Shown here: piece by piece, positions 3,064-24,956 of the stretch | Layout of the letters: every line of letters starts with the position of its first letter | Position numbering within the stretch: the stretch's first letter is position 1 | NCBI RefSeq assembly: GCF_000315625.1 | Contig: NW_005434660.1 | Location: forward strand, 62,001 to 126,000 | Origin: Guillardia theta CCMP2712 | Taxonomy: Eukaryota; Protista; Cryptophyta | Length of the DNA: 64,000 bases | Reading direction: 5' to 3' | Notes under the pieces: model-generated | The model's input: only the letters and a program-made list of their open reading frames with translations | The model's database searches: none | What the model was told of the DNA's origin: nothing | Translations under genes and position numbers: made by a program

Positions 3064-4874
3064 TCACGTGTCATACAATGAGATCTCATAACCGTTGCAC
3101 CTACCTCACTCATCTTCTTGTTCTTCTTCTTCTCTGCTTCACCTTGTCAACCTTGTAGAGCATGCAAGTTTGCAATCACCTTTCTTCCAGCTCAAGAACT
3201 TCTCTTTCCTCTTCTGCAGCACCTGAGCACATTTTCACTCCTCAATTAACCCCATTCTCCTCACCCATAGTGAAAGTTTAGTAGTTGACTTAGCGCGCAG
3301 AGCTTTCAGTCCAATTGCTTTCAGTTGTCCCAGCAGAATCTCCTGAGAAGTCCGTCAGCTCTCAACGCAGAAAATCGACGAGGCAACAAGAAGGTTAACA
3401 GGGACTTTGTGTTGCTCAGAAAGAAGTTTGAATGTGTGAGATTCAGACCTTGGTACAGAATCGAGAGTTCGAAGTACAACTTCGAGGGAGGGAGAAAAGC
3501 AATATTCCTCGGTCTCGCAGCATGCTGGTAGCTGCGATCAACATCTTTCCCCTAAGAAAACACAAAGTCAACAGGGGCTGACAGCAAACCACTTTGCTCT
3601 GTGGATTTCGTGTCTCTTCAGATCTTGCCGGTGGCTACATAACTCCTCTTGAAGTTCTCGAAAACAAGGGGTGCTGACCTCAGCTTTGGATCTCCTTCAA
3701 AGTTGAGCACAAGACAAAGAGCAATGCAGTCGAAGCGCTTCTTCTTCTCTTCTTGCTTCCACTTCTTGAAAAAGCTTGTGTAGAGCAGCAGGTCAAGGTC
3801 GCCAAACTGTTATTCCACAAGTTCACCTGAGAAGATCCAGTTGCTCAACTTGGGGTCCACACGGGTTTGGATCCAAACATACTGATCGAACACGTTTCAT
3901 GTTAACATAGGGGTTCGTCATCGAGCCAACATCCAGCAATCGCACATATCCTGCAAGAATGTTGGTATCGGTAGGAGAAGCAAACGTCAACTTCACCCCT
4001 GCCACCCTCCAAGAGGTTGCTGTCGAGCAACTTGTGAAATCTCATCTCTTGGAGAATCCACTCGGTCGAGTTGAAAGTTGTTGTTTGGTTTCTTGAGAAG
4101 ACTTGATCATCTACAGCTGATGTAGGCAGCGGGGCAGAAAAACAAGCTTTCTGATACATCGCACCAATGTCTCAGTGTCCGTCGACCTGCTCGGCTTTTA
4201 CCGAGCCCTCACCGCACCTGATACTCAGGCATCAAGTTGTCATCTGCCATCTTCTTCTTCAGCTTCTTCACTTCCTCCGCCTGTCCTCGTCGTCTTGCCT
4301 GTCAGACTGCAGTCAAGGCAACCAGAGTGACCAGGTTGTTCGCTTCACCGTGGCAAGAACCTTCTGCTGGTGGTGGACGCGATGGATTATGTTGGTGGCT
4401 ATCAGCTCAGTCACAAGACGAACATCTCAACGGACGAGAACCTTTGGTACGATTGAAGAATCCCTGCTCTTTCAGAAGTCTTAGCTTTCTTCTTTGCGTT
4501 TTACCTCTCTTTCCCCCTCTCCTCCTCATCCTCCTCGGTCCTTCAGCCCCTGCTCTCAATCCGCTCTTCAGGGACACATTCTCCTTTCCCGCTCTTGTGT
4601 CGCTTCTGACTCTCTTAGACGCTGAGACCTTCGTCTGCTTGCTACCTCCCGACTCCTTCAGTCTTGATTTCTTCACGCTCAGTTTCTTCACCCCTGTGAG
4701 CTTCTTTTCTCCCCTTGTTTTGCTTTGTTGCATCTTCCCCCCCCTTAGCCGAAGACACCAGATCACTTCATAGCTGTTATGATTCCCGTTGCCTTGTTGT
4801 CCTCTTTGTTCGATGGTTGCCACCATCGATGCAATCAAGACAAGGAGCAAAACAAGAAATGGAGGCAGACTCAT
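3064..4874 (-). CDS. BMT2: BMT2-like 25S rRNA (adenine-N1) methyltransferase with N-terminal signal peptide and LRLRGG presequence
   Basis: Exons encode YQKA...FNSTEWI, LLDVGS (SAM motif I), VEQLDLL, FDCIALCLVLNF and RGKML...LPRSCTSNSRF, in the Bmt2 motif order. Hydrophobic N-terminus MSLPPFLVLLLVLIASMVA. Confidence 0.8.
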
Positions 4875-5263
4875 CGCTTGTCAGCTCTCTCTGTGTGAAA
4901 AATTCACGATCTGCACACTGAGATCCNNNNNNNNNNNNNNNNNNNNNNNNNNNNNNNNNNNNNNNNNNNNNNNNNNNNNNNNNNNNNNNNNNNNNNNNNN
5001 NNNNNNNNNNNNNNNNNNNNNNNNNNGCCTCGCCTGCCTCGCCTGCCTGCCTGCCACTCCCCTCCCTCCACTCCCCTCCCTCCCTCCCTCCGTTCTTGGC
5101 ACCTCGTGTACAGACGCATCCGGAGCAGATTCTCCTCATACAGCTTCCGGAGCGCTGCTCGGCGAAACTCAGTGCAGATGTCACCGGCGCCGGCGGCGGC
5201 CCGGACCCGGCGATCGGACCTGCTGCGGCAGCCGCCTGCTAGATGCCGAGACGTCTGACTGTC

Positions 5264-5360
5264 AGTTTACCTGTACATGTTCAACGTCAGGTAGTTTACC
5301 TGTACATGTTCAACGTCAGGTAGTTTACCTGTACATGTTCAACGTCAGGTAGTTTACCTG
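5264..5360 (+). repeat. 29-bp tandem repeat, 3.3 copies (agtttacctgtacatgttcaacgtcaggt)
   Basis: Copies start at 5264, 5293, 5322 and 5351 (partial). A single near-identical copy lies at 12321-12349. Confidence 0.95.
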
Positions 5361-5364
5361 AAGC

Positions 5365-6990
5365 CTGGGGGCCCCTTTGCTGAACATCTCTCTGTGATCC
5401 ACTTGCTTCCCTCCCGTCTCCATAATCACCTCCCGTATGATAGCTTTGAACTCATCTCGATTCTCTAGCAAGCCTTGGCGAATGAAATCCTTTGCTGATT
5501 GTCCAGACTCATTTGGTACGAAACCAACTTGTCGCCTCTCCGAAACTCCTTCTGCCAATGCCTGGTTGCCCCGGCTAGATTGCTTGAACTCCAGAACTTC
5601 TCTTTGTATTTTTTCTAGGGACGCAATAACCTTGTCATTGGCCAGTGGACATATTGATGAACGTGTGGAGGAATGCCTGTCGCTTCCATTCTGCCCCTTG
5701 CTTCCTTTGGCATGCAGCAAACAATTGATTTCAAAGTATTCAGCATAGCTTCGTCCTGAAACAAGGCTGACTTCCAAAGAGGATGATTCCTCTGCAAATT
5801 CGTTCTCAGGAAGTCTGCATGGTATAACACGGATGCGAGGGCAAACTCCGCAACTCCATACATGCACATTGGTAATGTTGGGAACAGCATCTCAATCGCA
5901 CTTGTAACCATCCCTGACGAATCAGCTTCTTTGAAATGCGGCGGAAGAATTGCAAACTCTGACGAGTCGATGGGAAGCGCGTCCAACAAATGCATCACCT
6001 GCTGCTTCATATCGTAGATAGGTGTTGAAAACTGCTCCATTGGCCTTCCTGCTCGCTCAGACACAGCACTGCTCGATGGACAGTGAGTACTCCCGGATGA
6101 ACAATAAGTTGCTGCCCTTCCTAATAGAGTGACTTCCAAGATCCGCTGGTTGTAAACCGAGTGAACGCAGATGGGCAGTGACTGCAGTCTGCACTGCATC
6201 CATACCATTATGATCATCATGCCTTTCCGCGGTCTCGTCAGTGTCAGAGGGACTCGGGGCTGCTGATTGATTCGGTGGCATCATTATTTTTGAAAGAACC
6301 TGCATGAAACGCTTGCATGCAACCTGCATGAAACGCTTGTATTGTGATCTGCCTGGAAACAGGGACAGTTCATCTGGTAAATAGCAAAGCAAATAGATTC
6401 CTAATGCCAAAATGGGACAGATCTCTGGATAAATTGGATTTGCATAGACTCTCCTGGGGTCTCTGGGCTTGTCACCGCTCTGATCTGTTTTCGAGTGAGC
6501 AAAGAAAATTTGGAGATGATCTTCATTCCAGCACATGTGGTTGAACTGAATAGATTAGGCGTTTCCAGCGCGACACATAAGACTCCAACAAATGATGAGA
6601 AAGGTGCGAGCGAAGATGTAATTTCTCTTGTCGGAAAACATCATGGTTTTGCAAAACAAACGATAGGTTGTCATGCTCATAGGTTCTTTGCCTGTTGTTA
6701 TCTTCAGTACACCTGTTGCATCCATCTGATTCAGATCTTTCTTGAGGCCAACATAGAATTCTTGAAGAGCATTCTTGAATTCCAGCGGTAGGTCTTTCTG
6801 AAAATCTCTGAAAAAGCTGTTTATTGCCGATCGATGATTACTGTAAGTTGCAAAACCATTGTTCGGTGAAACGCTTAGCAGATGCGTGATCCACATACAG
6901 AAGTAGTCTGCGTCTAATTGATCGAAATGAATCCGGTAAACTTTTGGGGCATTCCCTGTTTCAACGTTTCAGAGATAATAATGCCATAAA
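5365..6990 (-). pseudogene. Decayed Crypton-type (CryptonS-like) tyrosine recombinase
   Basis: Across frames: WSLMCRAGN, HSKTDQSG..PRRVYANPIYPEICPILALGIY, GSHSIRKG, AATYCSSGST, RAG, NTYLRYEAAGDAFVGR, LPIDSSEFAILPPHF. These give the R-K-HxxR-Y catalytic pattern. In-frame TAA at ~6555, several frameshifts, and 3' truncation at the 29-bp array. Confidence 0.85.
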
Positions 6991-6999
6991 TGGCAACTT

Positions 7000-7940
7000 C
7001 TAACCTGCCCAAGATACAGAATTCTCGTCCAGTACCGTTCGTATGATCCTCTTCGATGGTAATGGTGGATCTCCTTCTTCCATATCTCTTTCAATCAAAT
7101 CTTTGAATTCCGTTGTCAATAGAAACAAGACATTGTCATATTGTTTATCCTCAAATATCAGAGAAACAGATTTATTGAACAATGTCAATTGTAAAGCTGA
7201 ATTGGTTGTATTATACGTATCGTTAGTGTATTCATCAAATAAATAAACATTATTGTTATCATCTACTAAGAACTGCGCAGGGTCAAAATTATATGTTGTT
7301 CCGCCTCCTGTGCTTGGCAATATGACGTTTTGAGTTGATACGGTTGAATCGCCAAATCTCACAAGCTCATTATTTTGACTGTCTAATAAAACAATCTCAG
7401 GGCAGTTTGTGCCGTCCGACCGCTCCCGATGCCAGTGGTCCTGGGGCTCCTTGCGGTCCTGTGGCTCCTTGCGGTCCTGTGGCTCCTTGCGGTCCTGTGG
7501 CTCCTTGCGGTCCTGTGGCTCCTTGCGGTCCTGTGGCTCCTTGCGGTCCTGTGGCTCCTTGTTTTGACCCTGTTGCTCCTTGCGGGCCTTGCGAGCCAGT
7601 CGCCCCAGGAACTCCTGGGATCCCTGGGGCACCAGGAGCGCCTGGACTCCGGGAAGACCGGGGGCACCAGGAGCACCAGGAGCTCCGAGTCCCGGAGGAC
7701 CCGTCGCGGGCCAGTTGCGCCAGTTGCGCCAGTATCACCCGGTGACCTTTCAACATCGCCTTTGTGAACTGGACGTCCGGCAGCTCTGTCAGCTGCAGCA
7801 TCCGTAAATTATTTCGAAACACTCATCGTTGTCGTTGAAGGGTCAAACACTGTGATATATGCGGGAAAATATGGGGAGGTGTTGATAAACTTGAATGGAA
7901 GGGTCGCTTCGCTCACAGGCCCGGTTTGACGGAGACCCAT
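7000..7940 (-). pseudogene. Collagen-like (Gly-X-Y) protein with an intronless AT-rich C-terminal domain, frameshifted; virus fibre-like
   Basis: 18-bp tandem repeat encoding (GPQGAT)n at ~7440-7590 plus [10 protein letters not shown]. The Gly-X-Y register continues upstream across frameshifts. The C-terminal domain is read in ORF 7000..7632. Confidence 0.7.
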
Positions 7941-9507
7941 TACGTTCGCTTGTTGGGTTTGGGGTTCCTTTTCCTGTGGGGCTCTGACTCAGATACCCGT
8001 CTATTGACACAGATACAGGCGTGGTAGGACTCCGAGAGGGAAATGCACAGGGGTGGGTCCTGTAATACTAATTTATTTGTTTTAATGGTACAAATTACAA
8101 TACTTTTTAGAGCATCAAGATTCGAACATGATGTCGATGAGATATCTTGATAACACGGTCGTTGTGTTGCTTTTGTTTATACAATCATCCTTATCGTAAT
8201 CTAATCTTGCAAGTTCAGAATCAAGCACCATCAAAGTGTTGCTGTGATGATTTTTCCTTTGCATAGTCGACAATGTTATGTTTTTATCAATAAACAAATG
8301 CTTGAGATGTAAATTGTTGCACTAGATATCCAGTGCTGTTTGTCAAAGCAGCTCAACCTTCACTCATGCCATGCCCTCACAAACAAGATGGGACAACGAG
8401 CAGCCTGCTTATGCCTCCTCATAATGCAATCAAGGATTTTGATTTGGCATAGTTCAAGATATTTGATGTCAGTGAGAAATTTGTACCTCAGATTTACAGT
8501 ATGCATTGGAATGGGAGAGGCAACATGTTTCATGGGCATTGGCAAGGTGTATGAACATCCAACTAAGGTCACGAAAGCATGAACTGAGCTGAGTGTACGT
8601 GTTCCATCAAGCATGATTCAAAGCTCATGGCCCTGATTTCAAGCGCGGTTCGTTCTGAGCTCAGCGGAAGCTCGCCACCTGCATGCTGTGCACTGATATG
8701 ATCTTCAGAACTTTATAGTGTTTTAGACAGTAGCAGCTTCGCATGCAGCGAGTAGCAATACTCTGTAACACGATTGTTCTTGGTCAAGGCATCATCAGAA
8801 TGTACGCATTCCATTAAGCATGATCTGGAATCAGTCCACTCAGGCTTGCAAGAGAACTCTTGTGCACATGACTCTGCAAATGCGCTGGAAAGTTGCATGC
8901 AGATCTATTGTGACACGAAGTAAACTCTGGCAGCATGATGATGTGACGCAGAAAATGATGTGACGCAGAAAGCTCACTCCACTGTACAGGTTGTCATCTC
9001 GCAAGATGTAAGGATATGAAGTCAAGCTATGTATGCAACATTGAGATACGTTGCTTCAGATTTGATCCACTGTCATGGATTCATTCAAATCGTCTTTTCT
9101 CCACATGTTGAGCACCAACAGCAAGTAGTCGATACACTTAGATCATCCCTACATTATTTTGTTTTGTCGTGAAACTTGTCTGCTGTCGATATCGTCACGA
9201 GCATGTTAATATGTTACGTATGTTCCTTGTTCTGCTAGGAAGGAAGGTGCCAAGGAAGAAAAGTGCTGTGTTGCTTGTTCATGTGGATGCACGAAGCTTA
9301 CCTGATAAACAAACATGAGAAGATCAATCTTCATTTGATCTCAGCTCACCATGATTCAAGTCGTGATGGGATCTGTTGTTGACAAACAGATTGCCGCTAA
9401 CAGTTGGCGTGTCTTCAAGAATGTTGTTCAAGCTGGAATTGGGGTTCCAAACAATCTAGACCATATAACGTCTGTCATCAACCTGTAAGTGGATCTTCTG
9501 AGTTTTG

Positions 9508-9537
9508 TTAGAAGACCCACCGGCGTGGGTCTTCTAA
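9508..9537. repeat. Perfect 13-bp inverted repeat with a 4-nt loop (ttagaagacccac-cggc-gtgggtcttctaa)
   Basis: Directly visible; overlaps a 22-bp imperfect direct repeat (9489-9510 / 9525-9546). Confidence 0.9.
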
Positions 9538-10381
9538 GTTTTGTTAATTTCATGTCACTGTAATGACGGTTTCCGAAGTTCCTTACGACTCAGGACTCAG
9601 GCGCGTAATGCCCGGGTGGTAAGGGGGGCCGATGAAGAGACAATCGTAGAGAGTCGCATTTAAAAGGCATCAGAGGTGACTCAGGACCTTGTAGGGATCT
9701 TGTAGGGCACTAGAGTAACGAAGCTGTAGAGCAGACTAGTAGAGCAGACTAATCGAAGTTTGGGAATCCCGTGTGTGATTGATTCGCAATCAACAAGTAA
9801 GACCTAATTGTCAACACAGGCTCCCGGAGTCCACACTGACTGGAGTTAGATTTTGTTTACTATGAAAGTAGGCACTCCGCGAGTATCAACGTATGTGAGA
9901 TAACACGACTGAGAGGATTCAGCATACAATGCCAATCACCGAAGTTGTCTTAGTTCGTTTGCACGGACTGTCACACAGAATGCGAACGTAAAATTGATCC
10001 CCGTATTGTGCATTCCCTGCAATGAAAACTTTGCGAGTAATGGGTCAAAATAGCACCCGATTGGTACGGTAACTTGGTTTCTGTTTACCTGGGGACCAAA
10101 CTTGCTATTGTCTTGGAGATACACCCGCTTGTTAAATAGTCGATTGACCGTTCTGAAGAACAGCTCACCGTCGATCACAATCGGAACTCAACGATCTCCA
10201 TAAGTTGAAGTCTACCAGAGTTCCTGGGTCCTACTAAACTAGCTGATAAAACAAAACGGGAAGAGTGGAGGATTGTGCTGAGCGCGCCAAACGGTAAAGT
10301 TTCATCTTCCAAACACACTCAATGCACTGTGCCCGATCCCTTCACCGATCACATCGTTCCACTCTTATCCGGCTGCGAGGC

Positions 10382-11406
10382 TTAACTTGCCCAGGTGGGG
10401 GCCATCAGTGGTAAAACCTTACCTTGGTGAAGTTTACATCTCGGCTTCTTTGATCCATCGATCAGATAGACCATCAGGTCATTCGTTATCAGGTCGTTTT
10501 TCTGAAGATACGTGATCATGCAAGCGACTGCCTGTGCCAAAGGTGGCGACCCTCCTACATAGTACCCTGGCGGTTCGTTTGGCAGAAAGGCTTTGCTGTG
10601 GAGCGATTTTGAGATCTCGTGCATCAGCCCCGACAGTTCTTTTGCTACTGACCTTTCATCTAGACCAAAGTCGTACTGGGCCAGATCCTGACACACTTGT
10701 TTTGAATGAGTGCTCAGCCTTAGCGAGTCCCTGCCCATCAGTAGTTGACTATTTACAGTCTTGCTGACGCCATCGCTCATGCTCATATTGCGGTAAGTTC
10801 TCAGCATTCCAATCTCGATCAAAGCCCTGTTGTTCAGAGTTGCAACGCGTTCTGCATCGAGGCAGACTATTTTTCCAAACATTCAGCCAAATTTGATGAG
10901 TAGACCTTCTCACGCCATTTGTGTTCATTGCGCTTCTCTTTGATCAGCCGTGCAGTTTCATTGCGCTTCTCTTCGATCAGCCTTGCAATCTCATTTCGCT
11001 TCTCTTCGTTGATAGCCTCCTTCTCTTTGATCAGCCTTGCAGTTTCATCGCGCTTCTCTTCCATCAGCCGTGCAGTTTCATTGATTAGCCTAGCAATCTC
11101 CTGGAGTTCTCTCGCATACAGCATAGTCATAATCTTACCATCTTCCCCTCGATCAGATCGTTGTACAATGTCTTTGTACAAGCTCAGCCGTTCAGAGAGG
11201 TCGGCAGGCAAGGAAACGCTGGAACCGCCGCGGAGCCGAACCAAGGGTAGGGGGCACGATCTGAGTGAGGGTATCACTGGTCTTGATATCCCAGTACAAT
11301 TTGGCATAGACGAGCTCGCAGGTGCTACTGGCCAGGGGGCGCGGGCGGCAGCGCGGGCGGCGGCGAAGGCGGCAGCGAGGAGAGTTTTGAGCGAGCATGG
11401 AAGCAT
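10382..11406 (-). pseudogene. Intronless hypothetical protein (signal-like N-terminus, VRLRGG, coiled-coil repeats) split by a 1-nt frameshift
   Basis: ORFs 10867..11406 and 10382..10882 overlap at an A-run (gaaaaatag). The ETARLIxEKR repeat is visible. The frameshift could be a homopolymer sequencing error. Confidence 0.55.
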
Positions 11407-11489
11407 GGCTGATCAGGGAGGGAGGAAGGGAGGGAGAGAAGGGAGAGAATGTATGGGTCTGTTTAAAACAAGGTTTTTGACTGTGCAAA

Positions 11490-12056: not shown

Positions 12057-12407
12057 GACGCCCACGAGCTGCATCCAATGGTTGTCGGGCCTACGGTTAC
12101 CTGTTCTCTGACGTTTTCTTCGGCCCCCGATTTGAGGCCTCAACTGCTTCCTGGACCTGCATGTCCTCCAATCGGAGACTCTGACTTGGCCCTATACTCA
12201 TATCTAAAAAGATGGCCTAATCATGGGCCCAGGCTAAACTGTACTGAGTGCAGACCGATGACCGGCGCGGCCCGGACCCGCGGGGACCCGAGCTACGGAG
12301 TAGACGCCGAGACGTCTGTCAGTTTACTTGTACATGTTCAACGTCAGGTCGTTGCCAAGTTGGACCCGCACGCGTTAACGAAGGAAGGAGAGGAAAAGAG
12401 GAGCTGA

Positions 12408-15083
12408 CTAGCGGAGGATGGCGGCGATCGCAAGCCCAACAATAAACCCGACCAGGGTAGCGAAGAGAACAAAAGTCAAATCCCCCTCCTCCTCTTCCTC
12501 CTCGTTCTTCTCCTCCCCTTCTTGCCTTCTGCCCTTCAACTTGGAAGCAGATTCCCCTGACCAGGCTGGCGGGGCCTTGAAAGACGGAAAACCATCCGAG
12601 GAGGAGGTGGGAAGGCCTAGCTTGCTGCTGAGCCAGTCGAACGAGGAGGCAAAAGGCACCACCCACGTCCAGCTCTGCCTTCCGACGCTCTCCAGCAGGG
12701 CATTGAGCGGGAAGGACTCGAGGTGGAGCAGCTGCTGCAGCTCCAGGCGCAACAGGGCGAGCTGGATGGGAAGGACACCCAGCGGCTTCATGTGCCCGTA
12801 CTCCGCGTTCCTCGGCCGCATCCTAGCCGCCTGCATGGCCTCGAGGTAGAGAGTCTTGGCTCGAGTGAGGTTCCTTGCTGTTCCCCTGCCCTCCTCCGTC
12901 AGCCACGCGGCGTTGAAGAGCGAGTGCGGGTCCTCCTTGTTCATAAGGTAGTGCTCCAGCGCTGCCGCAAAGTTCTGCTCCCCTCCGACGCCGGTGTACT
13001 CCATGTCCCCCAGCCTCCTCCTGGCAAGACAGATCAGCACGGGACAAGCATCGAGATCAGCACGGGGCAAGCATCGAGATCAGCACAGGACAAGCATCGA
13101 CTGGCTCCGGACCTGCTGGGGGCATCCCCTTCGACGGCAGCGATGGAGTAGAGGGTCCTTGCAAGCGTCAGGTTCTGCTGCTGCGCATGAGCAACTCCCT
13201 GCTCCACCAGGTACGCCAAGTTGGCGATGCCGCTGGTCCAGCCACAAGCAGCTGCGAGCTTGTACCGCAGATACGCCCCGACGTGGTCGTTGGCCACGAA
13301 GGAAGTCTCTGCCTTGGTCAGCAGGAAGCTCAGCAGGCCTCGCTCGGCCACAAATTTGAAGGCTCGCGCGGCCTCAGCGTGCGACTTTGCCCTCCCCTCC
13401 CCTCCCTCCGCCATCAAGCCCAGATGCCAGACAGCCGCTACCTCCCCTCTCCTCGCTGCGCCTTCCAGGAGGACGCGGGAGGAGGGGAAGTTGATCGCGT
13501 ATCCTAAGTCTCCCTGCCTGATCGCGGCCCCGAGCAGCAGCGATGCCTGCGTGTTCCCCACGTTTGCCGCCTCCTCCAGCAGACTTCGTGCCTTCCCGTG
13601 GTCGATCGAGATGTTTCCGCAGCCGCCATGCACGTAGCACAGCCCCATGTTCGTCTTCCCCCAGTGACTCCCAGCGGCCCCTGCGAACAAGACGGTGCTG
13701 AGCGTCTCGTTCCTGCGCATGCCAAGGCCGAGGAGCGCGAGAGTCCCGAGGTTGAGCTTCTGTTTCACGTCCCCGCCCCTGGCACTGACGGCTGCAGCCT
13801 TGCTGGCTCCCTCGAAGTCTCCGCGAGGGACGGAGTGATCCCGCCCCCACACATAGGAAGTGAAGATCCTGTCAAGAGCGTACAAGAAATCCTGCTGGAA
13901 CGTCGAGAGGTCCCTCTCCCGCGACCCAGCAAATTCACTCCAGCCCACCCCCTTGCCCGCTAGAGCTTCTGATCGATAATCTTCCGACAAATCCTCTAAG
14001 ATTTGCGATAAATCGTCGTACTCGAAGAGTCTCGCAGTCCCCTGCCTCCTCCTCCCTTTCCTCTCGCTCACGAAAGTGCTCCAGAGCGTCTCGCTTGTCC
14101 GAACTGAGATCTCAGCTGCTATCTGTCAAGGATATAAATCACTCCTTGTCAGGAAATTCATCCCTGCTATGCACACGAACATGTCCATTGCAAAAACCAC
14201 AAAACAACCTGCACTACTTGCAAACACACCAACATTTCTCCTTCGATCAAAATACCACAGAACTCCTGACAGAACTCTCACTTCACCTTGTAATGTTTCA
14301 TCGCTCTCGTCAGATTCTGCTCAACACCTAGTCCTCTCCAGAAACGAAAACCCATCGCCATGTGGCATATCGGATGTCCAACCCCTCCCGCCATGGTTTC
14401 GTCGGCACAGTCCCGCAGGTCAGGCGGAGCCTCCGGATCCAGAGGGTTCGGGTGACTGAGGATGGAGTAAAGAGCCTTAGCATGGAGGTTTCCTTGTCGA
14501 GCAGCGAGCAGGAGACGGTCAAGTCCCCTCCTCACCCTCCCCTCGCTGTTCTCTTCCCCATGTTCAACACCGAACAGCTCGCCGACAGCGGTCAGCAGCG
14601 CGTCTCCCTTGCACTCTCCCTCGCACTTCCCTCCCTCCTCCTCCTCCTCCACTACTGCCGCCACCTCCTTCTCGGGATCTGCAAGCTGGCCGCCAGTGCC
14701 ACGTCGCTCCACAGGCTCGAGCACCTGCCTTGCTAGTCAACTTGCCTTCACTCGACTCTCAACAAGCCTGCAGGGGGAGAAGCGACTTGGGCTTTCCTCG
14801 TATGATCCCGTCAAACTCCCGGATGGTCTCAACAGCTGGAGAAGCTCTATTGGGTGGCCTTGAAGGAGAGGAGCACGTGAACGTTCTCATGATGGGATTC
14901 ACACAGCTCGACGGGTTTCTCTCACGATCTGCATGATGGAGGGCAGTCATTTCTTTCCCTTCAACAGCAGCATCACATCAACAACCACACCTATCGCAAA
15001 GATCTTGATCTTGAACGTTCCGGCCTCGTGCACGACAGCGTTGAAATGTAGCAGCCCTTCACGGATCGGCAGCTCCATCTGAT

Positions 15084-15114
<31 letters not shown>

Positions 15115-15481
15115 TCAGAATGTCTTGATGACTTCGATCCCTACACAAAGGTTGCAAGACATGACAAGGTCTACCGGATTGTTCGAACCGACGTAAACAA
15201 GAAGAGCAAGGGTGTCGTCAGGTCTAGACGCGTCGACCCCAACGCTCTTCCACTCTCTGTCAGCTTCACCTCAACTCGTCTTCTCTGCCTCTCACCTCGA
15301 TCACCACCTGCACCTGACATGGCGTCCCTTCAAACGCTGCAGCAGCCGGAGGCGAATGCAGGATCATGTAGCGCTGCGCCGGCCTGAGGTCGAGCGGGAA
15401 AGGCTTCTTGTCCTCTGATGCAGCATTGACCAGCACCGATGACAGATTGGACAAGCAGAGGAAGAGGAAGACGAAGAGCAT
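12408..15481 (-). CDS. SEL1-repeat type I membrane protein, HRD3/SEL1L-like (ERAD)
   Basis: Signal peptide MLFVFLFLCLSNLSSVLVNA; several Sel1 repeats (MGFRFWRGLGVEQNLTRAMKHY, LGLMAEGGEG..SHAEAARAFKFVAERG, SLFNAAWLTEEGRGTARNLTRAKTLY); C-terminal TM segment LTFVLFATLVGFIVGLAIAAIL. Confidence 0.8.
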
Positions 15482-15777
15482 TATGTGATCGGTCTTACGA
15501 GGCATGTGGGAGAGTACCACCTTGCTGCTCGTCTTGTCTTGTTGTAAACCAGGGATCGGATGCGAGAAAGAGCAGCAGGTCATTGAACGGGTGAGACATC
15601 GCATGTTGTTGTGAGATGCACCAAGTCTTCTGCCTCACATGCAAGAACTACAGCTCTCCTCTCTTTCATCTCTCTCTCCTTCGTACCCTGCCGCTCGTCT
15701 CCTTCCTCCTTCCAAGTCCAGCCTATTCCGCACATTCATAGATCGTCGTCCATGTTTTTCTCAGTTCAGCCTACTGT

Positions 15778-15840
15778 TGGAGGAGCAGGAGGAGCAGGAG
15801 GAGCAGGAGGAGCAGGGGGAGCAGGAGCAGGGGTAGGGAT

Positions 15841-15924
<84 letters not shown>

Positions 15925-15940
15925 AGCAGTAGGAGGAGGG
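15778..15940 (+). repeat. (GGAGCA)n hexanucleotide microsatellite, intergenic
   Basis: Directly visible. Confidence 0.9.
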
Positions 15941-15989
15941 TGTTGGTGGGAAAGGAATAATGAGCAGCATGGGGTGCAGAAGATGTCTA

Positions 15990-16260
15990 GAAATTGTTTG
16001 CTGCCCTACTCTACTGCTAGTTCTCTTTGGAGACTACCCCCACCTGCTTCCATTACCGTACCCTTCTTTATAACACCCCCGAAAAGGTATCACCCTACCC
16101 TAGAAGATTCCCAATTCAACGTTCTTCAGTCCTGATACCCCTTATTTCCCATTGTATTACCCCACAATCCACAGCAGATCAATCATTGAAATTATGACTA
16201 CCCTTGCACTAATGACCCCCACCACCCTCTTCTCAGTACCACCCCTAACCAACTGAGAGG
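15990..16260 (+). promoter_or_regulatory. TACCC/ACCCTACCC-rich patch in a divergent intergenic region
   Basis: Dense C-run motifs, with similar patches at 21140-21340, 24925-25010, 31910-32190, 56650-56730 and 61890-62260. Function is inferred from position only. Confidence 0.4.
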
Positions 16261-16721
16261 CGCCGGCCGCCTGCGGAATTATGACGAATGGCGGGAGGAG
16301 GTAAGGGGAGGAGGAGGAAAAGGAGGAGGAAAGAGGAAAGAACAGGCTGAAGAAGCAGCCATGAAGGTCAAGGAAGATGGTATGATTGGGGAGGAAGGAG
16401 GGGAGGAAGGAGGAGGGGCAGCAGGGGCAGTAAGGAGATTGTGTCGAGGACGTGCTCTTGCAGTAGACGGACAGATCAAGTGCCTTTGTGTGAGAGATAG
16501 TGCGAATCAGGGGGGCTGTGATGCTTCTTGGCAATGTTTGTTGATGTACTCTTGTGGTTTTACCTCGACGTCTCATGCGAACTGTTACTTTCGAACCATC
16601 CGATATACAAGGCTCTAACTCCCGTGCTGGGATCCTCAGCCATGTCGATGGTTTTCTTGTGTTGTGGCAAGGAAAACTGCGACTTTCTAGTCTTTTTGTG
16701 CATCATACACGAGTTTGCCTC

Positions 16722-18501
16722 ATGAGTTCGGCTTTTACATCTCTATTTGTACATGTCTGTTCAACTCCGCGTTGATAGCGCTAACAGGTGGTTGACGGTC
16801 TTGGTTGGGATCTGCTGCGCCTCTTTTGCCCACTCGCTTCACAGTGCTTCTGCTACCCTCGGCCTCAGCAAACTTGAGAACCTCAGCCTGAGGGGCGGGG
16901 GATTCGGTCCTTTCTTCAAGAAGCCTCCTCCTCCCCCCCCTCCTCCTGCTCCTGTCAGGAAGTCAATCATGGACATGCTACCAGTCAGCTTCACGGAGCT
17001 TTCAGCTGTGGTCCTTATGGCAGCCATCACCCACCTCTCTAAGCCGAGCAGCTTCCATCCCATCGGCGCTCCTCACACCATCCAGCATGTCTTCTACTAC
17101 GGTTGGATCGCAGCGCTCTCGACGGGCCTCGGGGTCATCCCGCTCCTGTTCATGCACAAGATTCAGGATGTCTGGCTTGGCCTGTCCAACGCTGTTGCTG
17201 CTGGCATGATGATCTCCGCCTGCTATCACCTCGTCGAGGAGGGGCTCACTCTAGAGCCTGACGGTTCAACCTTGTTCAACATGGCTGTCTCGCACCCTGT
17301 CAGGGTGGTAGCTGGACTGCTGCTGGGGGCCGGGTGAGGGAGGGAGGGGAGGGGAGCAGGGGTAGTGATCTAAATTGTTTCCCGTGCTCAGATTCGTGAT
17401 CTCGTCCAAGTCATGGATTGAGAAGCACGAGGATCTCAAATTCGGGAGCCTCACAGGGAAAGATCTCAGAAAAGTTTTCCTCATGGTTGCCGTCATGACC
17501 CTCCACTCCTTCTCTGAGGGACTGGGTACGTCTTCCGCCTGCCCCTCCTGTGCTGACTAGCTTCCAGGGATCGGAGTCAGTTTCACGGGCAAGGATGGAG
17601 CACACTTGGGTGCGATGGTGACGGGTGAGGGAGAGCAGGTGGTCGACTCGTCACGTCGTGACTGTCTGTTCTTGCAGCCACACTTGCCATGCACAACATC
17701 CCGGAGGGTTTGGCTGTCGCCCTCGTGCTCATGCCCAGAGGAGGTCATATTTCCCTCCCTCCCTTCCCCTCCTTCCTCCCCCTCCCTCACATCACCTCCC
17801 TCCCTCCTTTCCTCCCGTGCCCTCCCTTCCTTCCCTTCTCTCTCTCCTCTCTATGTAGAAGATGAACGTTTTCTCAACAGTCAGCAAGTTCAGCACCATC
17901 TTGTGGGCAATCTTCACCAGCATGCCTCAGGTGACCATGAGGATTAGCCCATATGAGCTGATCTTTTATAACAGCCGCTGATCGCCGTGCCTGTCTTCAT
18001 CTTCGCTCGCCATTTCATCTTCTGGCAATCTGTCGGTACGTTGCAATTCCTACCACTTGTGCTATACAGAGGGGCGAGCTTTGTTGGCATGAACGATTTC
18101 TCCTCCTCCTTCCTTCCTCCTCCTCCTTGCTTTCTCCTCTTCTTCCCTTTCTCCTCTTTCTTCCCTTTCTCCTCTTCCTCCTCTTCCTCCTCTTCCTCCT
18201 CTTCCCTTCGTCGTTCTTCTTTCCCTACCTAACACTTATACCTCATGCTCTCCTAGGACTGGGGTTTGCGGCTGGTTCCATGCTTTGGGTCACATTCTTC
18301 GAGTTGTTGGCGGACGCCATGAAGGTCAGCAGCTTTACAGCTCTCGCTTCCTCTGATCTCCCAGCAGGACCTCTCCTTGTCAACAACCGCCTTGACAACG
18401 GTGTGCGTTTACTTGCTGTGTTGTCCCGGTGACGAACGTGGCAGGTTATGTCCTTCGCTGCTGGCCACCTTCTCCGGCATTGGCTCCCGGAGCCATCGTA
18501 G
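16722..18501 (+). CDS. ZIP-family (ZupT/GufA-type) metal transporter with signal peptide and LSLRGG presequence
   Basis: AALSTGLG, NAVAAGMMI, TLHSFSEGLG, AMHNIPEGLAVA and GFAAGSML are ZIP signature motifs; short GT-AG introns. Confidence 0.9.
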
Positions 18502-18689
18502 GGACGATGTTGAATTCTATCCAGTACAATACAATGTAGGAAGCAGAAGCTGCGAAGATTGGCAGACTGGTGTGTGCGATTTGAGCAAGACAGACGTAGA
18601 TGCCCATGTGTTCAACTTGCAGCCATGAGGGCGTTTTCACTTCAATCATCAGTATAAAGAATATCACATGGGCTAGGCAGGGAGGACGA

Positions 18690-20885
18690 TCATCTCAGAA
18701 TAAGATCCAAGTTCTTACTCAACACGTTTGATACCAGCTCGTTCGCTGTGTTCCCCACCATGGCTCCAGCTCGCAAGTCTTCCTTGTAGATGGCATAGAA
18801 CATGCCGAAGAGTTTCGTCTTGCAAGTTTCATACCTGCAGTCTTTACGGTCTATTCGTTCTCCCAGTTGTTTTCCAATGCAATCAAGCACCAGCGCCTTG
18901 TTTGCCTCACTTACTCGTGAAGCTCCCGTGGGCTTTGCAGGGGGCTTGGAATATTTTTCTTTCTTCTGCTGCACCGCAGAAGCTCGTGGAGCAGGAGGAG
19001 GCAGAGACTGAGTAGTTCCCCCAGGTCGCCCCATTCTTCCTTCGCTCAAGGTTGCTGTCTTGCCTTTCACCGGCGCGACACTAATCTCCTTGCTGTTCTC
19101 TGAGCGACGGCGAACTCGTCTCAGCTCCAATTCTACATCTTCCCAGTCGTCGAAACAATAGTCGACTCCATGCGTGCGCTTCGGGTATTGTGGAATTACA
19201 CAATCAAAACCGTCAGCGCCTCGAAAATGCTCAACTGTTGGATGGAAGTTACTGTCACTCATGTCGAAAGCATCGCAGAATCTTGAGTAGTCGACCAATG
19301 TCTCGTGCACCCCTTGATCGTCAAAGTTTGGAGAGACCTTTTGACAAAATGCCTGAGTGTTGAATTTCTTCAATGCAGATCTGATCTTCTTTGCTGCGAG
19401 GTCTCTTGACTCCGGGAAAGGAGGAACTTGATGGTTCTGATTCACTTTTTGAACAGGACTGAGCTGAGAGGAGACGGTTTGTAACTGATGCAGACCCTTT
19501 TCAAAATCCAGGATGATTGGTCGCTCTTTGAAGGATGAAGAAAACTGTGAAATGATAGAGCTGCACTCCATCGCAATTTCCTGTTCATAATATGAGAGAA
19601 GACGATTTCGCATGTCACTTTTGTTCAAATCAAACACACAGTCCTTCAAAATGGCATTGTCAACAGAAGCATCTTTCGTATCTACAGATGCTTCAATGGT
19701 CCTTAACCCCGTTGGAATAGCAGATTTCATCTCCTCAAGCAATGCAGAACCTATTCTGAAATCATAGTTCTTGATAGAATCGTAGTTCTTCAAAATTGTA
19801 ATTCGCCATGAGCCATCCTGACAGCTCTGATGGATGACCAATAATGTTTCACAGTCATCCAACTTTGTGAAATCAGCTTCAAGAATGTGATCTCGAGAGC
19901 CTTTCTCCAAAATTTGCCGAGAAACTACCTTGAGAGGATGTTCCAAGATCTTTTTATAACTACTTAGTTTACAAAGAAAGCCCATATTCCCCTGTGACAT
20001 CTGCAAAAGGTTTTTGAATTTTTCAGCGACAATGTCCCTTTCAAGAAATTCAAGATTCAAAACTGCGGCAAAAAAATGGATGGGGATTGTCAACATGTCA
20101 ATGGGCTTTAAGATTTCTATCGTATTTGCATAAATTGTCAATTCATCTGTTGTTGATTTTGTGTGCTGCTTGCAGAGTTCATAATTGCAAAAGTTGCCAT
20201 TCTGACGGACAAATTGAACCTTGCACTTATGTCGAATGGATGTGCTAGGTCCTAGAAGATCAAACACCATCTGACCTCTCCATTCCGTTGACCATCTCAG
20301 GATGTCTTCGACCTTGGGCCAAATCTTTTCATCCATCGAACATTCTTCCACAACAGCAGGGTTGACAGCATATTGCAAGAATTCTTTTGAGATTTCCGTG
20401 CAATCTGCTTTCAGTAATTCCTGCCAATCCTTCAAGTTGTCTCGGCACTTCGGGTCTGTCAAGTCATCAGGGCAAACTACTATTCGAACACTGGCACCAA
20501 AACAATCCACAGCAGTAATCAAAGGAGCAAACATGATCAGAGCTTCTCCTTGTTCCAAGCTGTAGGAACCATCGGTCAGCCATATGATATCCAGCAAGCT
20601 GTTGCCTTTGATGTCTTGCAGTAGCTGCATCACGACCTCATCGAGGCTTTTGCTAGTCAAATGTTCACCCGTTAATCCTGATCGCTCATGGAGCTCAAAC
20701 CAGCTACACCATGACGTGGCAGAGTAGGATCTGCTCACTGCAGCAACGCGAGAGGCAGAGACATCGAGTCCGTGGTCTTCCAGCAGCTTCAGGACAGCTG
20801 AGGAAGATAAAAGCTCGAGCAACGGACTTCGGTCTTGATCTACGATGAAAAGGTGATGACGGACGTTTGAAACGATCATCACCAT
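18690..20885 (-). CDS. MTBP/Sld7-like replication origin-firing factor, 731 aa, single exon
   Basis: Long uninterrupted ORF. HGVDYCFD resembles the MTBP HGIEYCLD motif. The C-terminal CKTKLF...YKEDL resembles the MTBP C-terminal domain. The N-terminus is vWA-like (LFIVD, DIIWLTDG). Recognised from memory of the family. Confidence 0.65.
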   Translation of the reverse strand: MVMIVSNVRHHLFIVDQDRSPLLELLSSSAVLKLLEDHGLDVSASRVAAVSRSYSATSWCSWFELHERSGLTGEHLTSKSLDEVVMQLLQDIKGNSLLDIIWLTDGSYSLEQGEALIMFAPLITAVDCFGASVRIVVCPDDLTDPKCRDNLKDWQELLKADCTEISKEFLQYAVNPAVVEECSMDEKIWPKVEDILRWSTEWRGQMVFDLLGPSTSIRHKCKVQFVRQNGNFCNYELCKQHTKSTTDELTIYANTIEILKPIDMLTIPIHFFAAVLNLEFLERDIVAEKFKNLLQMSQGNMGFLCKLSSYKKILEHPLKVVSRQILEKGSRDHILEADFTKLDDCETLLVIHQSCQDGSWRITILKNYDSIKNYDFRIGSALLEEMKSAIPTGLRTIEASVDTKDASVDNAILKDCVFDLNKSDMRNRLLSYYEQEIAMECSSIISQFSSSFKERPIILDFEKGLHQLQTVSSQLSPVQKVNQNHQVPPFPESRDLAAKKIRSALKKFNTQAFCQKVSPNFDDQGVHETLVDYSRFCDAFDMSDSNFHPTVEHFRGADGFDCVIPQYPKRTHGVDYCFDDWEDVELELRRVRRRSENSKEISVAPVKGKTATLSEGRMGRPGGTTQSLPPPAPRASAVQQKKEKYSKPPAKPTGASRVSEANKALVLDCIGKQLGERIDRKDCRYETCKTKLFGMFYAIYKEDLRAGAMVGNTANELVSNVLSKNLDLILR

Positions 20886-21389
20886 TACGCGATCGCACTT
20901 GCAAGGGATTCCTTCTTCTCACTGCATGTCTGTCTTGCTCTTCATACTTTCCTCTCCGTTCGCTCCCTCCTCCCTCTCAAGATCCCTTCCCTCCTCTCGG
21001 CCCTTCCATTCCCGCCAAAACACCGCATCTTACCACGACTGTCAGTGCTACCGGCCTTTAACCGGCCCCCGGGCCCGGGCCCGATTACTCGATTATCGCC
21101 TCCGACAGCCTTTACTCAAAGTTACAGCCAGTCCGTCAGCCTTATATCCCCCTACCCCTCCGCAAACCACAGGACCCTACCGTACCCAGGCCTTTCCCTC
21201 GTCACTACCCACCACCTGCTCCTGTGGGAGTAAAATGTCCTCTGAAATACATGCGAGTACCCCTGCATGAGAGTAACAACCCTACCCGCTAATGTGCTAC
21301 AGAGCACCCGCCCCCTGCCACCCCTCCAAAATACCTTAAAATGGAGGAAGAGCGCAGGTGAAAATTGGCAGGTGAGGCAGGGACGAAGC

Positions 21390-21585
21390 AGAGGAGCAGG
21401 CAGAGGAGCAGGGAGTATGGGAGGAGGGAGCAGGGAGCAGGGAGCAGGGAGCAGGGAGCAGGGAGCAGGGAGCAGGGAGCAGGGAGCAGGGAGCAGGGAG
21501 CAGGGAGGAGGATAGGAAGGAGGGAGCAGGGAGGAGGATAGGAAGGAGGGAGCAGGGAGCAGGGAGCAGGGAGCAGGGAGGGAAG
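21390..21585 (+). repeat. (GGGAGCA)n heptanucleotide repeat
   Basis: Directly visible. Confidence 0.9.
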
Positions 21586-21784
21586 GTGCAAGGATCAGGG
21601 GTGTGTACATGTTGGGATACCGCAACTAAGCTCAGCTCAAAGTTTGAGTCAGGAAATTGCATAGAGATGTTCAAAAGTCAGGAATTGAGTTTCGCAAGAA
21701 ATTTCATGACGTAACAACCAATTAATCTCCTCGGGTCGGTTTGCGGTGGCGTGGAAATGTGACTTGGCCTTCATATTCTTCTAG

Positions 21785-23092
21785 ATGAGGTCAAGACCGC
21801 CCGTGCTCGCAGGAGCCACCATGGTGTCTGCCGTCTTCTATGCTTCATACCCCGCACAAGGTAGTTACCTCTCGTCGGCAACTTCTTCTTTTGATCAGTC
21901 CTGCAAGGATTCATGCTGTCAACGCCAATTCATCGCAAAGTTGCGAGAATCTCCGGAAACTACAGGTGTGGAACTCGATTTGATCTGGATTCGATCTACC
22001 GATCTCTCTTGCGCTCATCAAATTATGATGAGTTGTCCCTGCCATCAGAAACAAGGGATTCCCCGCTTCCCTGCTTCGCTCAGATGATAAGATACAAATC
22101 CAGAGGCAATCTACGACGCAGCCTCGTTCCATTTATCCCGTCATGTCGCAGGTTGTTGGAGCTTCGACAAGGTGTGAGAAAGACTGACTGTAAGTCGACA
22201 GAACCGAATAGAACCAGAAAGTCAAGCAGAGAACATGAAACCTCGATCAGCCGTGGTGAGTTGCTTTCTGCCTCATTGTCAATCAAGGATCGTATTTCTC
22301 ATTGGCATCATCTTCACGCGTTTCTCTAGTCTCTTATTGCAGCCCTTGCTTCATCCTTCCTACATCCCTCATGCATCGCTGCAGGCCGTGGCAGGCTGCC
22401 GCCTCCTCCCATCGGGTGAGACTGAGTGGCTGCTGATCAAGCGCGGGAAGGTACGAGAGCGAACTCGAGGGGCTCGTCTGACTTGCAGGGAACAGCCGCC
22501 CTCCTACGGCGAGTGGAGTCTGCCGGGTGGATCAGTGGAGTTGGGCGAGAGCACTATAGCAGCAGCGAGACGCGAGGTGAGCGCCGTCAGAGGAGGGACG
22601 AGGGGCGCCTGAGTTACTGCCCAGCTGTGTGAAGAGACGAGGCTCTCGTCGAATGATGTGAAGTTCTTCGAAGATTCGTTCATGACTAGCGATGCTATTG
22701 TCAAAGATGCAAGAAGCGACGTGACGCTGTTCCATTACGTTATCGCTCAGCTGTTTGCCGAGATCAAGCCAGAGGTCTCTCCTGTCCTCCTCCTTCCCCG
22801 TTTCCTCCTCCTCCTCCTCCTCCTCCTCCTCCTCCTCCTCCTCCTCCTCCTCCTCTGGCGCCTTGTTGACCATGACGTAGGCTCAAGTGGTGGCGGGAGA
22901 TGATGCTCTAGACGTGGGATGGTTTACCAAGGAGAAGATCCGAGAATCTTCCTTCGGCGCAGTATGTCCTACCAAAAGTGTCCTGAGGGCGAGACTGGCG
23001 TTGACCCCAGTTGCCAGGTATCCCCGGGGGTGCTGAGGGTGGTGGAGAGAGCGGAAGAGCTCAGGAGGGCAGGATGTCTTAAGCTCGATTGA
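21785..23092 (+). CDS. Nudix hydrolase
   Basis: WLLIKRGK..PSYGEWSLPGGSVELGESTIAAARRE|LCEET forms the Nudix box across an intron; FHYVI lies downstream. Confidence 0.85.
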
Positions 23093-23128
23093 CCACTCTC
23101 CACTTCCTCCCCCCCCCTCTTCCTCCCC

Positions 23129-23175
<47 letters not shown>

Positions 23176-23207
23176 ACCACAACCGCTGGGGAAACACTCG
23201 ATGCGGA

Positions 23208-24956
23208 TCATCTTCTTGGTTCCAGTTGCCATCCACCGGGTCGTCCTGCAGGAAACAATGAACGAGAGCAGGGTGCCAAAAGGAGCGATTTCACATATTC
23301 GTAGTCGTCGAAAGTTCCCAGCTGTAGCCAGCGGGTGAGGAATGCTGAAGAAGCAAGCATAAACATCCTTACCGATCTCTGAATGACGTTCTCGATGTTG
23401 TACTCGTCCTCCAGCCCGTCGAACTTTGGAGGCTGTGACGCAAGTCAAGAAGGGAGAGCGGGGGTTTGGACTGAGGGGTTCACCTCGAAAGTGAGCTCCT
23501 GGAACCGGTCGTCGTCCACCTCTTTCTTCTTCTCCTTCTCCATCTCGTCGTCGTCTGCCCAGTACGCAAGGTCCACCTGCCGCACAGGTCAGGATACAGC
23601 GCTCTCCTTGCTCCTATATACCTTCTCCACCAGGCTGATGTTGACCCTGTCCGTTCCAAGGTCCCAGTCATTCTTGCGGAAGACGTAGACGAAGTCTGTC
23701 TCGTTGACTGACCAGCTGTTGTCAGCAGTCCTTAGGGGAAATGAGACAAGCATCACTTGTTGAGATGAAACCGTATCGCACTCCACCCTGTTCTGTCTTG
23801 AACGAAACCCTAAAGGTGTCTGAGTTGTTGAAATGTGCAGTCGTTGCATCTCACCAGTCGCCGACCTGTAAGGGTGCGTCTGGTTGGTTCTTGAACGGGG
23901 TGACAAGCTCGCTACTGTTGGCAAAACTCTTCAAGAATTCCTTCCTCTGCTTGGCAAGGTTGTTGGTTTCAACGCTGTCAAGGTGTATGTTCAACAGTTT
24001 GAGATGACTCTCGTTTCTCAGGGGCTCGTGGTGCTGCGTCATCTGTCGAAGCTTCACGTTGAGTACGGGCATGAAACGTCTCTAACCTCAAGGTTTGTGA
24101 TGTTTTCTTGGTTTCTTGAGTTCCATTTGTCTGGGATAGCACAGGCACGTCAGGGAGAACTAAGACTTCAAGGAGATCATCTTTCACCCTCCGCATCTGA
24201 AAGATAGAATTCGTCTTCAATCGCATCTTCATCTTTTTCACCCTGCAGGCAGTCAATGAGAACTCCGGGCTGTCGCATACAACCTTGGCGTCCTTGGTCC
24301 AAATTCTTCCATTCTGCCATCCAAGATCAGGGTTGCGGTGAGAACAGGAGGACAAGGTTGGATCGTTTAACCTTTACGAAGAAATCCAGAAGCTCCTTGG
24401 TGTTCTCAGTCTTCTCGTCGTCATCCTGTGAAAGGAATAAGTGAGGACACGGCAGCGTCCAAGTCCAATCACGTCAACAAACGCTCCATGCGCGGCGGGC
24501 CCTTCATTCTCTTGCATGGCCGCCTTTTCAACATCGATGACAGTGGGTTCTGATCCGGCACTAACAGATTGAACTGCGTCGCAGGTTAGATTTCACTTGT
24601 CCCTCTCCTCCCACTCCTGAAGTTCTCACCATCATATTCGTCAACATTGATGGTCTCATATTCGTCGCCTGCAGAGTTTTCTTCATGTTGGACAAGTTTC
24701 AAGCATCGCCTGTACCTTGCGGCATGTCCATGATCGGGCCATCATCTAAAGGCTCCGACCCCCCTCGCAGGCGCAGCTTCATGCTTGTTTGAGCTTGAGA
24801 GTTGGATGCTCCAAGGAGAGGACTGAGAGGGTTGCAGCCGAGAAGCAAGCATGCAGGCCGAGAGTTTGACGCCCTTCCCTGCATGATCGGCAGGCTTACG
24901 ACCATCATCGCCACCGCTATCGCTGTTGCTATCGTCCGCCCCACCATATTTTCCAC
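23208..24956 (-). CDS. Hypothetical acidic multi-exon protein with signal peptide and LRLRGG presequence
   Basis: N-terminus MENMVGRTIATAIAVAMMVVSLP...MKLRLRGG; several coding-like exons with GT-AG borders. No family recognised. Confidence 0.6.

Follow-up and report, generated by a model that had tools for sequence, protein, structure and literature searches.

Proteins bound for the periplastid compartment, the remnant cytoplasm of the endosymbiont around the plastid, and for the nucleomorph of cryptophytes carry bipartite sequences, for which the published rule (Gould et al. 2006, as given in PMC4494062 and PMC5443833) is a signal peptide and, behind it, a region that resembles a transit peptide and has no aromatic first residue. 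Here we describe N-terminal leaders of Guillardia theta CCMP2712 in which these two elements are followed by a third, a short motif with the sequence of the ubiquitin tail. Four such leaders lie in a stretch of 64,000 nucleotides (assembly GCF_000315625.1, contig NW_005434660.1, forward-strand positions 62,001 to 126,000), which we call the window and whose own numbering is used below. Leaders of this class have the same architecture as the published sequences, an endoplasmic reticulum (ER) signal and then a short region rich in Ser, Ala, Arg and Pro and low in acidic residues, and they serve the same cargo classes, nucleomorph histone H2A being a published example. They differ in their ending: the published rule covers only the first transit-peptide-like residue and holds no ubiquitin-tail motif. 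Of targeting features, the G. theta papers PMC4494062, PMC5443833 and PMC6559170 name no more than the signal peptide, the transit-peptide-like region and the +1 rule. In the literature on Guillardia, plastid or nucleomorph we found no relevant description of an LRGG or RGG motif; subscription papers and supplements lay outside this search, and an earlier mention is possible. Nucleus-encoded periplastid proteins are estimated at about 2,400, and where the cleavage site of the signal peptide is in doubt they are hard to tell apart from plastid proteins (PMC4494062).

Several other described systems come close in single respects. The hexapeptide LRLRGG is the C-terminus of ubiquitin, and the first residue of the next protein stands directly behind it, as in polyubiquitin. 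The leaders differ from ubiquitin precursors in that 10-38 disordered-looking residues without a fold precede the motif, in that variants at positions -3 and -4 and an exchange of Arg for Lys are tolerated, and in that their cleavage is a prediction. Linear LXGG cut sites are known for the coronavirus protease PLpro and the adenovirus protease, as well as from peptide substrates such as Z-LRGG-AMC; it is general knowledge that at such sites a short L-x-G-G without a fold suffices for cleavage and releases proteins from a precursor. In G. theta, [LI]-[RK]-G-G is followed by residue 2 of eEF1A (locus L015) or by Met, which is the position of an LXGG-type site. The viral LXGG sites lie in polyproteins, whereas the G. 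theta motif stands at the end of an organelle-import leader in a cellular proteome.

The PEXEL/TEXEL motifs of apicomplexans and the RxLR motif of oomycetes are likewise short motifs that lie 20-60 residues past a signal peptide and govern onward sorting, and PEXEL/TEXEL is cut by a dedicated protease. They differ in sequence (RxLxE/Q/D, RRL, RxLR), in having aspartyl enzymes of the ER or Golgi as their known proteases, and in their destination, which is the host cell and not a compartment derived from an endosymbiont. Closer in place is the symbiont-specific machinery SELMA, derived from ER-associated degradation (ERAD), together with the deubiquitinase ptDUP, as described in diatoms, haptophytes and chromerids: the compartment is the same, import depends on ubiquitin, and de-ubiquitinating activity is expected to act on the imported proteins. 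In contrast to what is considered here, the ptDUP clade is reported absent from cryptophytes, and the enzyme is thought to strip ubiquitin from lysines and not to trim leaders. Finally, bacterial double-glycine leaders also end in GG and are removed during transport by a papain-like cysteine protease (the C39 peptidase domain), yet they have no Sec signal, follow the consensus LSxxELxxIxGG and serve bacterial export, whereas the G. theta leaders open with a hydrophobic ER signal.

Six-frame translation of the window located LRGG 11 times, and the four sites reported in the first-pass annotation are among these occurrences. Site 1 (LRLRGG, 4737-4754, minus strand) comprises residues 41-46 counted from the ATG at 4874, with the codons CTT CGG CTA AGG GGG GGG. 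Site 2 (VRLRGG, 11224-11241, minus strand) comprises residues 56-61 from the ATG at 11406 and reads GTT CGG CTC CGC GGC GGT. Site 3 (LSLRGG, 16882-16899) is on the plus strand, spans residues 44-49 from the ATG at 16753 and is encoded by CTC AGC CTG AGG GGC GGG. Site 4 (LRLRGG, 24759-24776, minus strand; CTG CGC CTG CGA GGG GGG) corresponds to residues 58-63 from the ATG at 24947. From Met to the end of GG the leaders measure 46, 61, 49 and 63 residues, respectively, and in all four an in-frame ATG and a hydrophobic stretch lie upstream, with no stop between these and the motif. Thus the motifs are present behind signal-like starts as first reported, with the residue numbers unchanged for site 1 and corrected by three for site 4, which had been miscounted as 61-66, and with the strand, minus for three of the four, now added. 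The shared motif does not stem from a DNA repeat, which is ruled out by the differing codons and by leader DNA that is no more alike among the four sites than shuffled controls; the likeness of the sites is convergence at the protein level, and the earlier claim to this effect stands.

The G. theta assembly comprises 87.1 Mb in 669 contigs, with the window on contig 14. The sequence read amounts to about 0.35 Mb, made up of the window, of 30 loci at 3 kb each and of 200 kb taken at random from contig 1. The background was formed by 11 permutations of the tetrapeptide in the window and the random 200 kb, where context means that Met and a hydrophobic stretch lie upstream at a distance of 20-100 residues. 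Permuted tetrapeptides occurred in such a context in 5 of 193 cases (2.6%), and LRGG in the window in 4 of 11 (P ~1e-4 against the permutations). A degenerate DNA pattern for LRLRGG matched the genome 353 times; at 18-20 of the 30 sampled loci an in-frame Met and hydrophobic signal were found 29-60 residues upstream of the encoded LRLRGG, with a Fisher P of 1e-14 or lower against the background of 5/193. Two window sites and 17 of the sampled loci combine a leader with exact LRLRGG, and at one more locus, L003, the motif reads LSLRGG. Counted raw over the genome, LRLRGG is not clearly above the controls (353 versus 193-441), which gave 193 for the GGRLRL pattern and 255 and 441 for the reversed controls. 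The enrichment resides wholly in the context of the motif (60% versus 2.6%) and not in its raw count. In the random 200 kb a single clear case was seen besides a CRCRGG variant, so that the class is real but sparse in that stretch. The four sites of the window are members of a class of N-terminal leaders that is genome-wide. One of the sampled open reading frames (ORFs), at locus L010, is GUITHDRAFT_99447 of G. theta CCMP2712, with 100% identity and coverage; the genome is accordingly that of a cryptophyte, which has a complex plastid of red-algal origin and a nucleomorph, and not that of a diatom.

Two observations on the distribution of the motif may be added. A 395-residue ORF on the minus strand (L034:8751-9935; G000 C1:238751-239935) has a signal peptide and reads VCRCRGG/AGKRP 43 residues from Met, the slash marking the end of the motif; it may be a motif variant in which Cys replaces Leu, and it has no Pfam family. 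Motif-bearing genes may also be physically clustered, with four of them in 20 kb of the window (4737-24776) and three others (L006, L007 and L008) within 22 kb of contig 1 (G000 C1:1200039-1222062). If 210-1000 such genes were placed at random, fewer than 0.5 stretches of 20 kb with four of them would be expected per genome; the gaps among 100 listed pattern matches were not clearly shorter than chance. Clustering is thus no more than suggested.

The anatomy of the leaders was derived from 22 sequences, with signal peptides judged by hydropathy (10-residue window) and by eye. All 22 open with Met and then a 10-residue window of high hydropathy. The GG end lies 35-64 residues from Met (median 47), and the spacer between hydrophobic core and motif measures 10-38 residues (median 23). 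Its composition (Ser 17%, Ala 9%, Leu 9%, Arg 8%, Gly 8%, Pro 8%; Asp and Glu together 6%) and its mean net charge of +1.2 make it resemble a transit peptide, that is, a segment rich in Ser, Ala, Arg and Pro, with few acidic residues and slightly basic; 13 of the 22 spacers have no lysine. The terminal motif is commonest as LRLRGG and has the general form hydrophobic-x-[LI]-[RK]-G-G, and upstream of position -6 no conservation was seen among the 22 leaders. Various residues come next after GG (Ser, Gly, Met, Leu, Gln and others). Pro was found at +1 in none of the 22, a count too small for significance, and no aromatic residue (Phe, Tyr or Trp) stands at the likely signal cleavage site of any of them, as judged by eye without formal cleavage-site prediction.

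Two identities suggested by the motif were considered and rejected. No leader-bearing ORF matched the ubiquitin family, and the 10-38 residues leave no room for a beta-grasp fold; a ubiquitin-like domain of about 70 residues does not fit into such a leader. Nor is the motif an RxLR or PEXEL element, as the conserved residues are [LI][RK]GG and the architecture alone is alike.

The place of the motif with respect to the mature protein can be read from conserved cargo. Residues 48-96 of the ORF at L015 align with residues 2-50 of eEF1A in solved structures; since residue 48 corresponds to eEF1A residue 2, the second Gly of the motif occupies the place of eEF1A Met1. Met follows GG directly in 3 of the 22 leaders (P = 0.012), and it looks as if in these genes the leader had been added ahead of a pre-existing start codon. 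One of the sampled loci (L027) reads SLLRLRGG/MKLF and was aligned in a structure-database search with the polyubiquitin joint LVLRLRGG/MQIF. These alignments place the motif at the point where the mature protein, of cytosol type, starts. The proposal of the first-pass annotation is supported in so far as the motif marks the end of a presequence.

Relatives of two leader-bearing proteins were found in other sequence collections. For the exon of the ZIP metal transporter at site 3, JGI and Logan assemblies yielded homologues with 46-50% identity over the aligned N-terminal segments and BLASTP local identities of 49% to 63%. Five of them retain [LI][RK]GG in the same column, with leader ends that read ALHLRGG, ALRIRGG, GMRLRGG and NMMLKGG, the last found by reading the contig upstream of a mis-called start. 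In an alignment of the six ZIP sequences that have a leader, [LI][RK]GGG is the common point, and the signals and spacers diverge. Diatom-type ZIP homologues were also retrieved (one labelled Cylindrotheca); as these have neither leader nor motif, the feature may be specific to cryptophytes. For eEF1A we searched with the pattern R-G-G-G-K-E-K followed by the P-loop region of eEF1A, and one metagenome contig matched, with an intronless eEF1A that reads ...SLPSIGSLRLRGG followed directly by GKEKLHCSIVV; the spacer ahead of the motif is unlike that of G. theta. In both families, as aligned, the motif is kept in relatives while the rest of the leader drifts.

A technical point arose with the relative whose leader ends in NMMLKGG. 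The Logan transcript contig opens with a remnant of a sequencing adapter (L056:1-25), and the gene call began at an internal Met, so that the true leader (MSQSS...MMLKGG) was masked. Leaders can be cut short in this way when genes on contigs of this kind are called automatically.

The cargo behind the leaders points to the periplastid compartment. Locus L017 encodes histone H2A. G. theta has four H2A genes, exactly one of which has a signal peptide plus an extension that resembles a transit peptide, and its product was localised to the nucleomorph with antibodies (PMC5443833). Because L017 is an H2A with a leader and the single leader-bearing H2A on record is nucleomorph-localised, one bearer of the motif is experimentally a nucleomorph protein. 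Another, L006, is a starch/glycogen phosphorylase (E 1.5e-44), and starch synthesis takes place in the cryptophyte periplastid compartment (PMC4494062). L015 is eEF1A, and a later exon of L027 gave TRM112 as all six of its best matches in the structure database, which are weak (E 0.014). Together with the Bmt2-like protein of site 1, these proteins uphold the earlier, tentative assignment of the motif bearers to the periplastid compartment. Further bearers are a protein with CCHC zinc knuckles (L007), a class I methyltransferase (L010) and a RETICULATA-like protein (L016); orthologue searches with L010 and L016 returned only the sequences themselves or near-identical ones. Among the signal-bearing proteins of the random 200 kb, those free of the motif are a ClpB-type chaperone, an RPE65-family enzyme, a GH5 cellulase and a large TIG/Kelch/lectin protein; the chaperone has Tyr after its signal and is of the stromal type. 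The link of the motif with the periplastid compartment is well supported, with the four window proteins assigned to it by the likeness of their leaders, and a restriction of the motif to periplastid and nucleomorph cargo fits this small set. A second Ufd1-like locus (L052) is so fragmented by introns that its N-terminus cannot be read; the cryptophyte sUfd1 has been placed in the nucleomorph by a recent preprint.

Taken together, these data are probably best explained by a leader of three parts, an ER signal, a transit-peptide-like spacer and a ubiquitin-tail motif that is cut in the periplastid compartment by a protease of the ubiquitin-processing type. By means of the signal peptide the chain would enter the ER lumen that surrounds the plastid, and the spacer would take it across the SELMA translocon, of ERAD origin, and so into the periplastid compartment. 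In that compartment the ubiquitin tail would be recognised by a cysteine protease of the type that processes ubiquitin, which would cut after GG, much as polyubiquitin or ubiquitin-fusion joints are processed, and would leave the resident protein with an N-terminus close to the native one. The motif would be missing from stromal proteins, which have an aromatic first transit-peptide residue and travel further. The cut after GG and the deubiquitinase-like nature of the enzyme are inferred from the junction position of the motif and its identity with the ubiquitin tail.

Some deubiquitinase-type proteases cut short LRGG peptides and LXGG sites without a ubiquitin fold. The periplastid compartment runs a ubiquitin system and a proteasome of its own. 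According to a recent phylogenetic study, haptophytes, stramenopiles and Vitrella have deubiquitinases of the ptDUP clade and cryptophytes have none, and because the clade is missing there an alternative periplastid enzyme is to be expected. All four sequenced cryptophyte nucleomorphs encode a UfSP/ZUFSP-like 'putative deubiquitinating enzyme' to which no role has been assigned (PMC6559170). A more specific version would be a maturation by 'natural ubiquitin fusion', in which the leader ends in a ubiquitin tail and a periplastid enzyme of the deubiquitinase type acts as the long-sought transit peptidase of the compartment, with the nucleomorph-encoded UfSP-like peptidase (Gt2_270) as one candidate; this we put forward tentatively, as an arrangement whose chances fall somewhat short of even.

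Several points weigh against cleavage by such a protease. Most deubiquitinases require the ubiquitin fold in addition to the tail, and the leaders are too short for the fold and contain no detectable ubiquitin domain. The cut after GG is deduced from position and motif and not from a mature N-terminus, and the candidate protease is a lead from the literature. Two bearers, the ZIP transporter and the RETICULATA-like protein, are membrane proteins. The part of the genome that was read is small, and its random portion held a single clear case besides the CRCRGG variant; signal peptides were called by hydrophobicity and eye and not by a trained predictor. The gene models that join leader exons to downstream exons are predictions from genomic sequence, and the organisms behind the related sequences are presumed to be other cryptophytes.

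Among the rival explanations, two keep the periplastid setting and change the role of the motif or the enzyme. The motif could be a recognition signal for translocation or retention instead of a cut site, that is, a built-in ubiquitin tail bound by the Cdc48-Ufd1-Npl4 complex of SELMA, by a ubiquitin receptor or by an inactive deubiquitinase, by which periplastid residents would be pulled in or held without ubiquitination of lysines. The 13 spacers without lysine speak for this, as do the identity of the motif with the ubiquitin tail and the absence from cryptophytes of ptDUP, the usual periplastid deubiquitinase; in diatoms, transit-peptide lysines are reportedly needed for SELMA import. Set against these points, known ubiquitin receptors bind a folded surface and not the tail, and the motif lies at the start of the mature domain, in the place of eEF1A Met1 or just ahead of a Met, as expected of a cut site, whereas a binding site could be anywhere in the leader. 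We consider a pure recognition signal unlikely. Alternatively, a peptidase from outside the ubiquitin system could remove the leader at the motif or close to it, such as an M16-type processing peptidase or another protease of the periplastid compartment or the ER, the likeness to the ubiquitin tail being convergent. The junction position reveals the place of processing and not the enzyme, and the variants LSLRGG, MMLKGG, ALHLRGG and perhaps CRCRGG leave only [LI][RK]GG as strict, which is short enough for convergence. The commonest form is nonetheless the exact ubiquitin hexapeptide, in a compartment with ubiquitin-based import and housekeeping, and cysteine proteases with a second role as deubiquitinases are known to cut behind a linear L-x-G-G. 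An unrelated peptidase therefore also has a low probability in our estimate.

Two further explanations would detach the motif from the complex plastid altogether. All bearers open with an ER-type signal and several have no recognised function, as would suit a propeptide or sorting motif in general use in the secretory pathway of the host. Such a motif is very improbable, since eEF1A, histone H2A, the Trm112-like protein, Bmt2 and starch phosphorylase are of cytosolic or nuclear type with no role in a secretory lumen, the leader-bearing H2A was localised to the nucleomorph, and clear secretory proteins in our sample are without the motif. An origin of the pattern in chance, or in the picking of ORFs by eye, would draw on words coding for LRGG being common and on the unremarkable raw count of LRLRGG. 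It is in effect negligible in view of the enrichment in context, the conservation of the motif across species in two families and the full-length match of two ORFs to deposited or library proteins.

Processing of the leader at a ubiquitin-tail motif, our preferred reading, bears on how periplastid residents lose their leaders and on which enzyme replaces the deubiquitinase missing from the cryptophyte SELMA set. If it is correct, the ubiquitin logic of the ERAD-derived translocon would be written into the cargo itself, and the motif would allow the periplastid and nucleomorph proteome to be defined by a simple rule of sequence. The conserved junction offers a putative cut site open to mutation, a peptide that could serve as substrate in enzyme assays and a small number of candidate enzymes, and in evolutionary terms it informs the adaptation of an ERAD-derived machine to import.

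As for the genes behind the four sites, exons were searched singly and not joined, and the links from leader to downstream exons rest on the genomic sequence. The leader of site 1 (4737..4874, minus strand) runs from the Met at 4874 through a hydrophobic signal, a 25-residue spacer and LRLRGG into a Lys/Arg-rich stretch. Two exons further downstream on the same strand (3446..3809) match consecutive parts of Pfam Bmt2, a 25S rRNA m1A methyltransferase (PF11968; E 2e-4 at profile positions 92-127 and 3.5e-3 at positions 124-164), and by strand and distance the leader and these exons probably form one gene. An assembly gap (4927..5026) lies outside the leader, 53 bases upstream of the ATG at 4874 on the strand of the gene. 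An in-frame TGA stands two codons ahead of this ATG; the frame therefore cannot enter from the gap, and leader and motif are in contiguous sequence. The gene may have an extra 5' exon beyond the gap. At site 2 (10870..11406, minus strand) an orphan protein of 179 residues consists of an Ala-rich signal, a 38-residue Ser/Pro spacer, VRLRGG and a repetitive, coiled-coil-like region; an identical 179-residue protein is present in the protein library, and an orthologue search gave no orthologues. Site 3 lies in exon 1 of the ZIP gene (16753..17337, plus strand), which encodes the signal, a 20-residue spacer, LSLRGG, G-FGPFFKK, a poly-Pro run and transmembrane segments, and whose homologues bear PF02535. 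The names BMT2 and ZIP given at first pass to the genes of sites 1 and 3 are supported by these matches. The leader of site 4 (24759..24947, minus strand) has a signal, a 38-residue spacer and LRLRGG, and an intron (GTACAG) begins 19 codons past GG; family searches returned no recognisable family for this gene or for site 2.

The window also holds a gene on the minus strand (12408-15480) with a clear signal peptide (ATG at about 15480) and no LRGG. Three of its ORFs match PF08238 weakly, and it appears to run into Sel1 repeats, as the ER protein Hrd3/SEL1L does; according to this predicted gene model it would be a signal-peptide protein without the motif at the same locus.

Other features of the window are of minor concern here. 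Between the ZIP gene and site 4 an ORF runs uninterrupted for 731 residues (18690-20885, minus strand); it belongs to no Pfam family, and the contig index has no record of an identical product. Long simple-sequence tracts (1596-2292, 15611-16135 and 21152-21674) translate to poly-Ser, poly-Asp/Glu, Gly/Ala runs of the (GA)n type and PAPCSLL repeats, and yield many spurious 'signal-like' ORFs in hydropathy scans. Finally, in the stretches 5325-7000 (minus strand) and 7000-7822, ORFs with tyrosine-recombinase-like motifs, possibly of a mobile element of the Crypton or DIRS type, adjoin a collagen-like array of GATGPQ / KEPQDR repeats.

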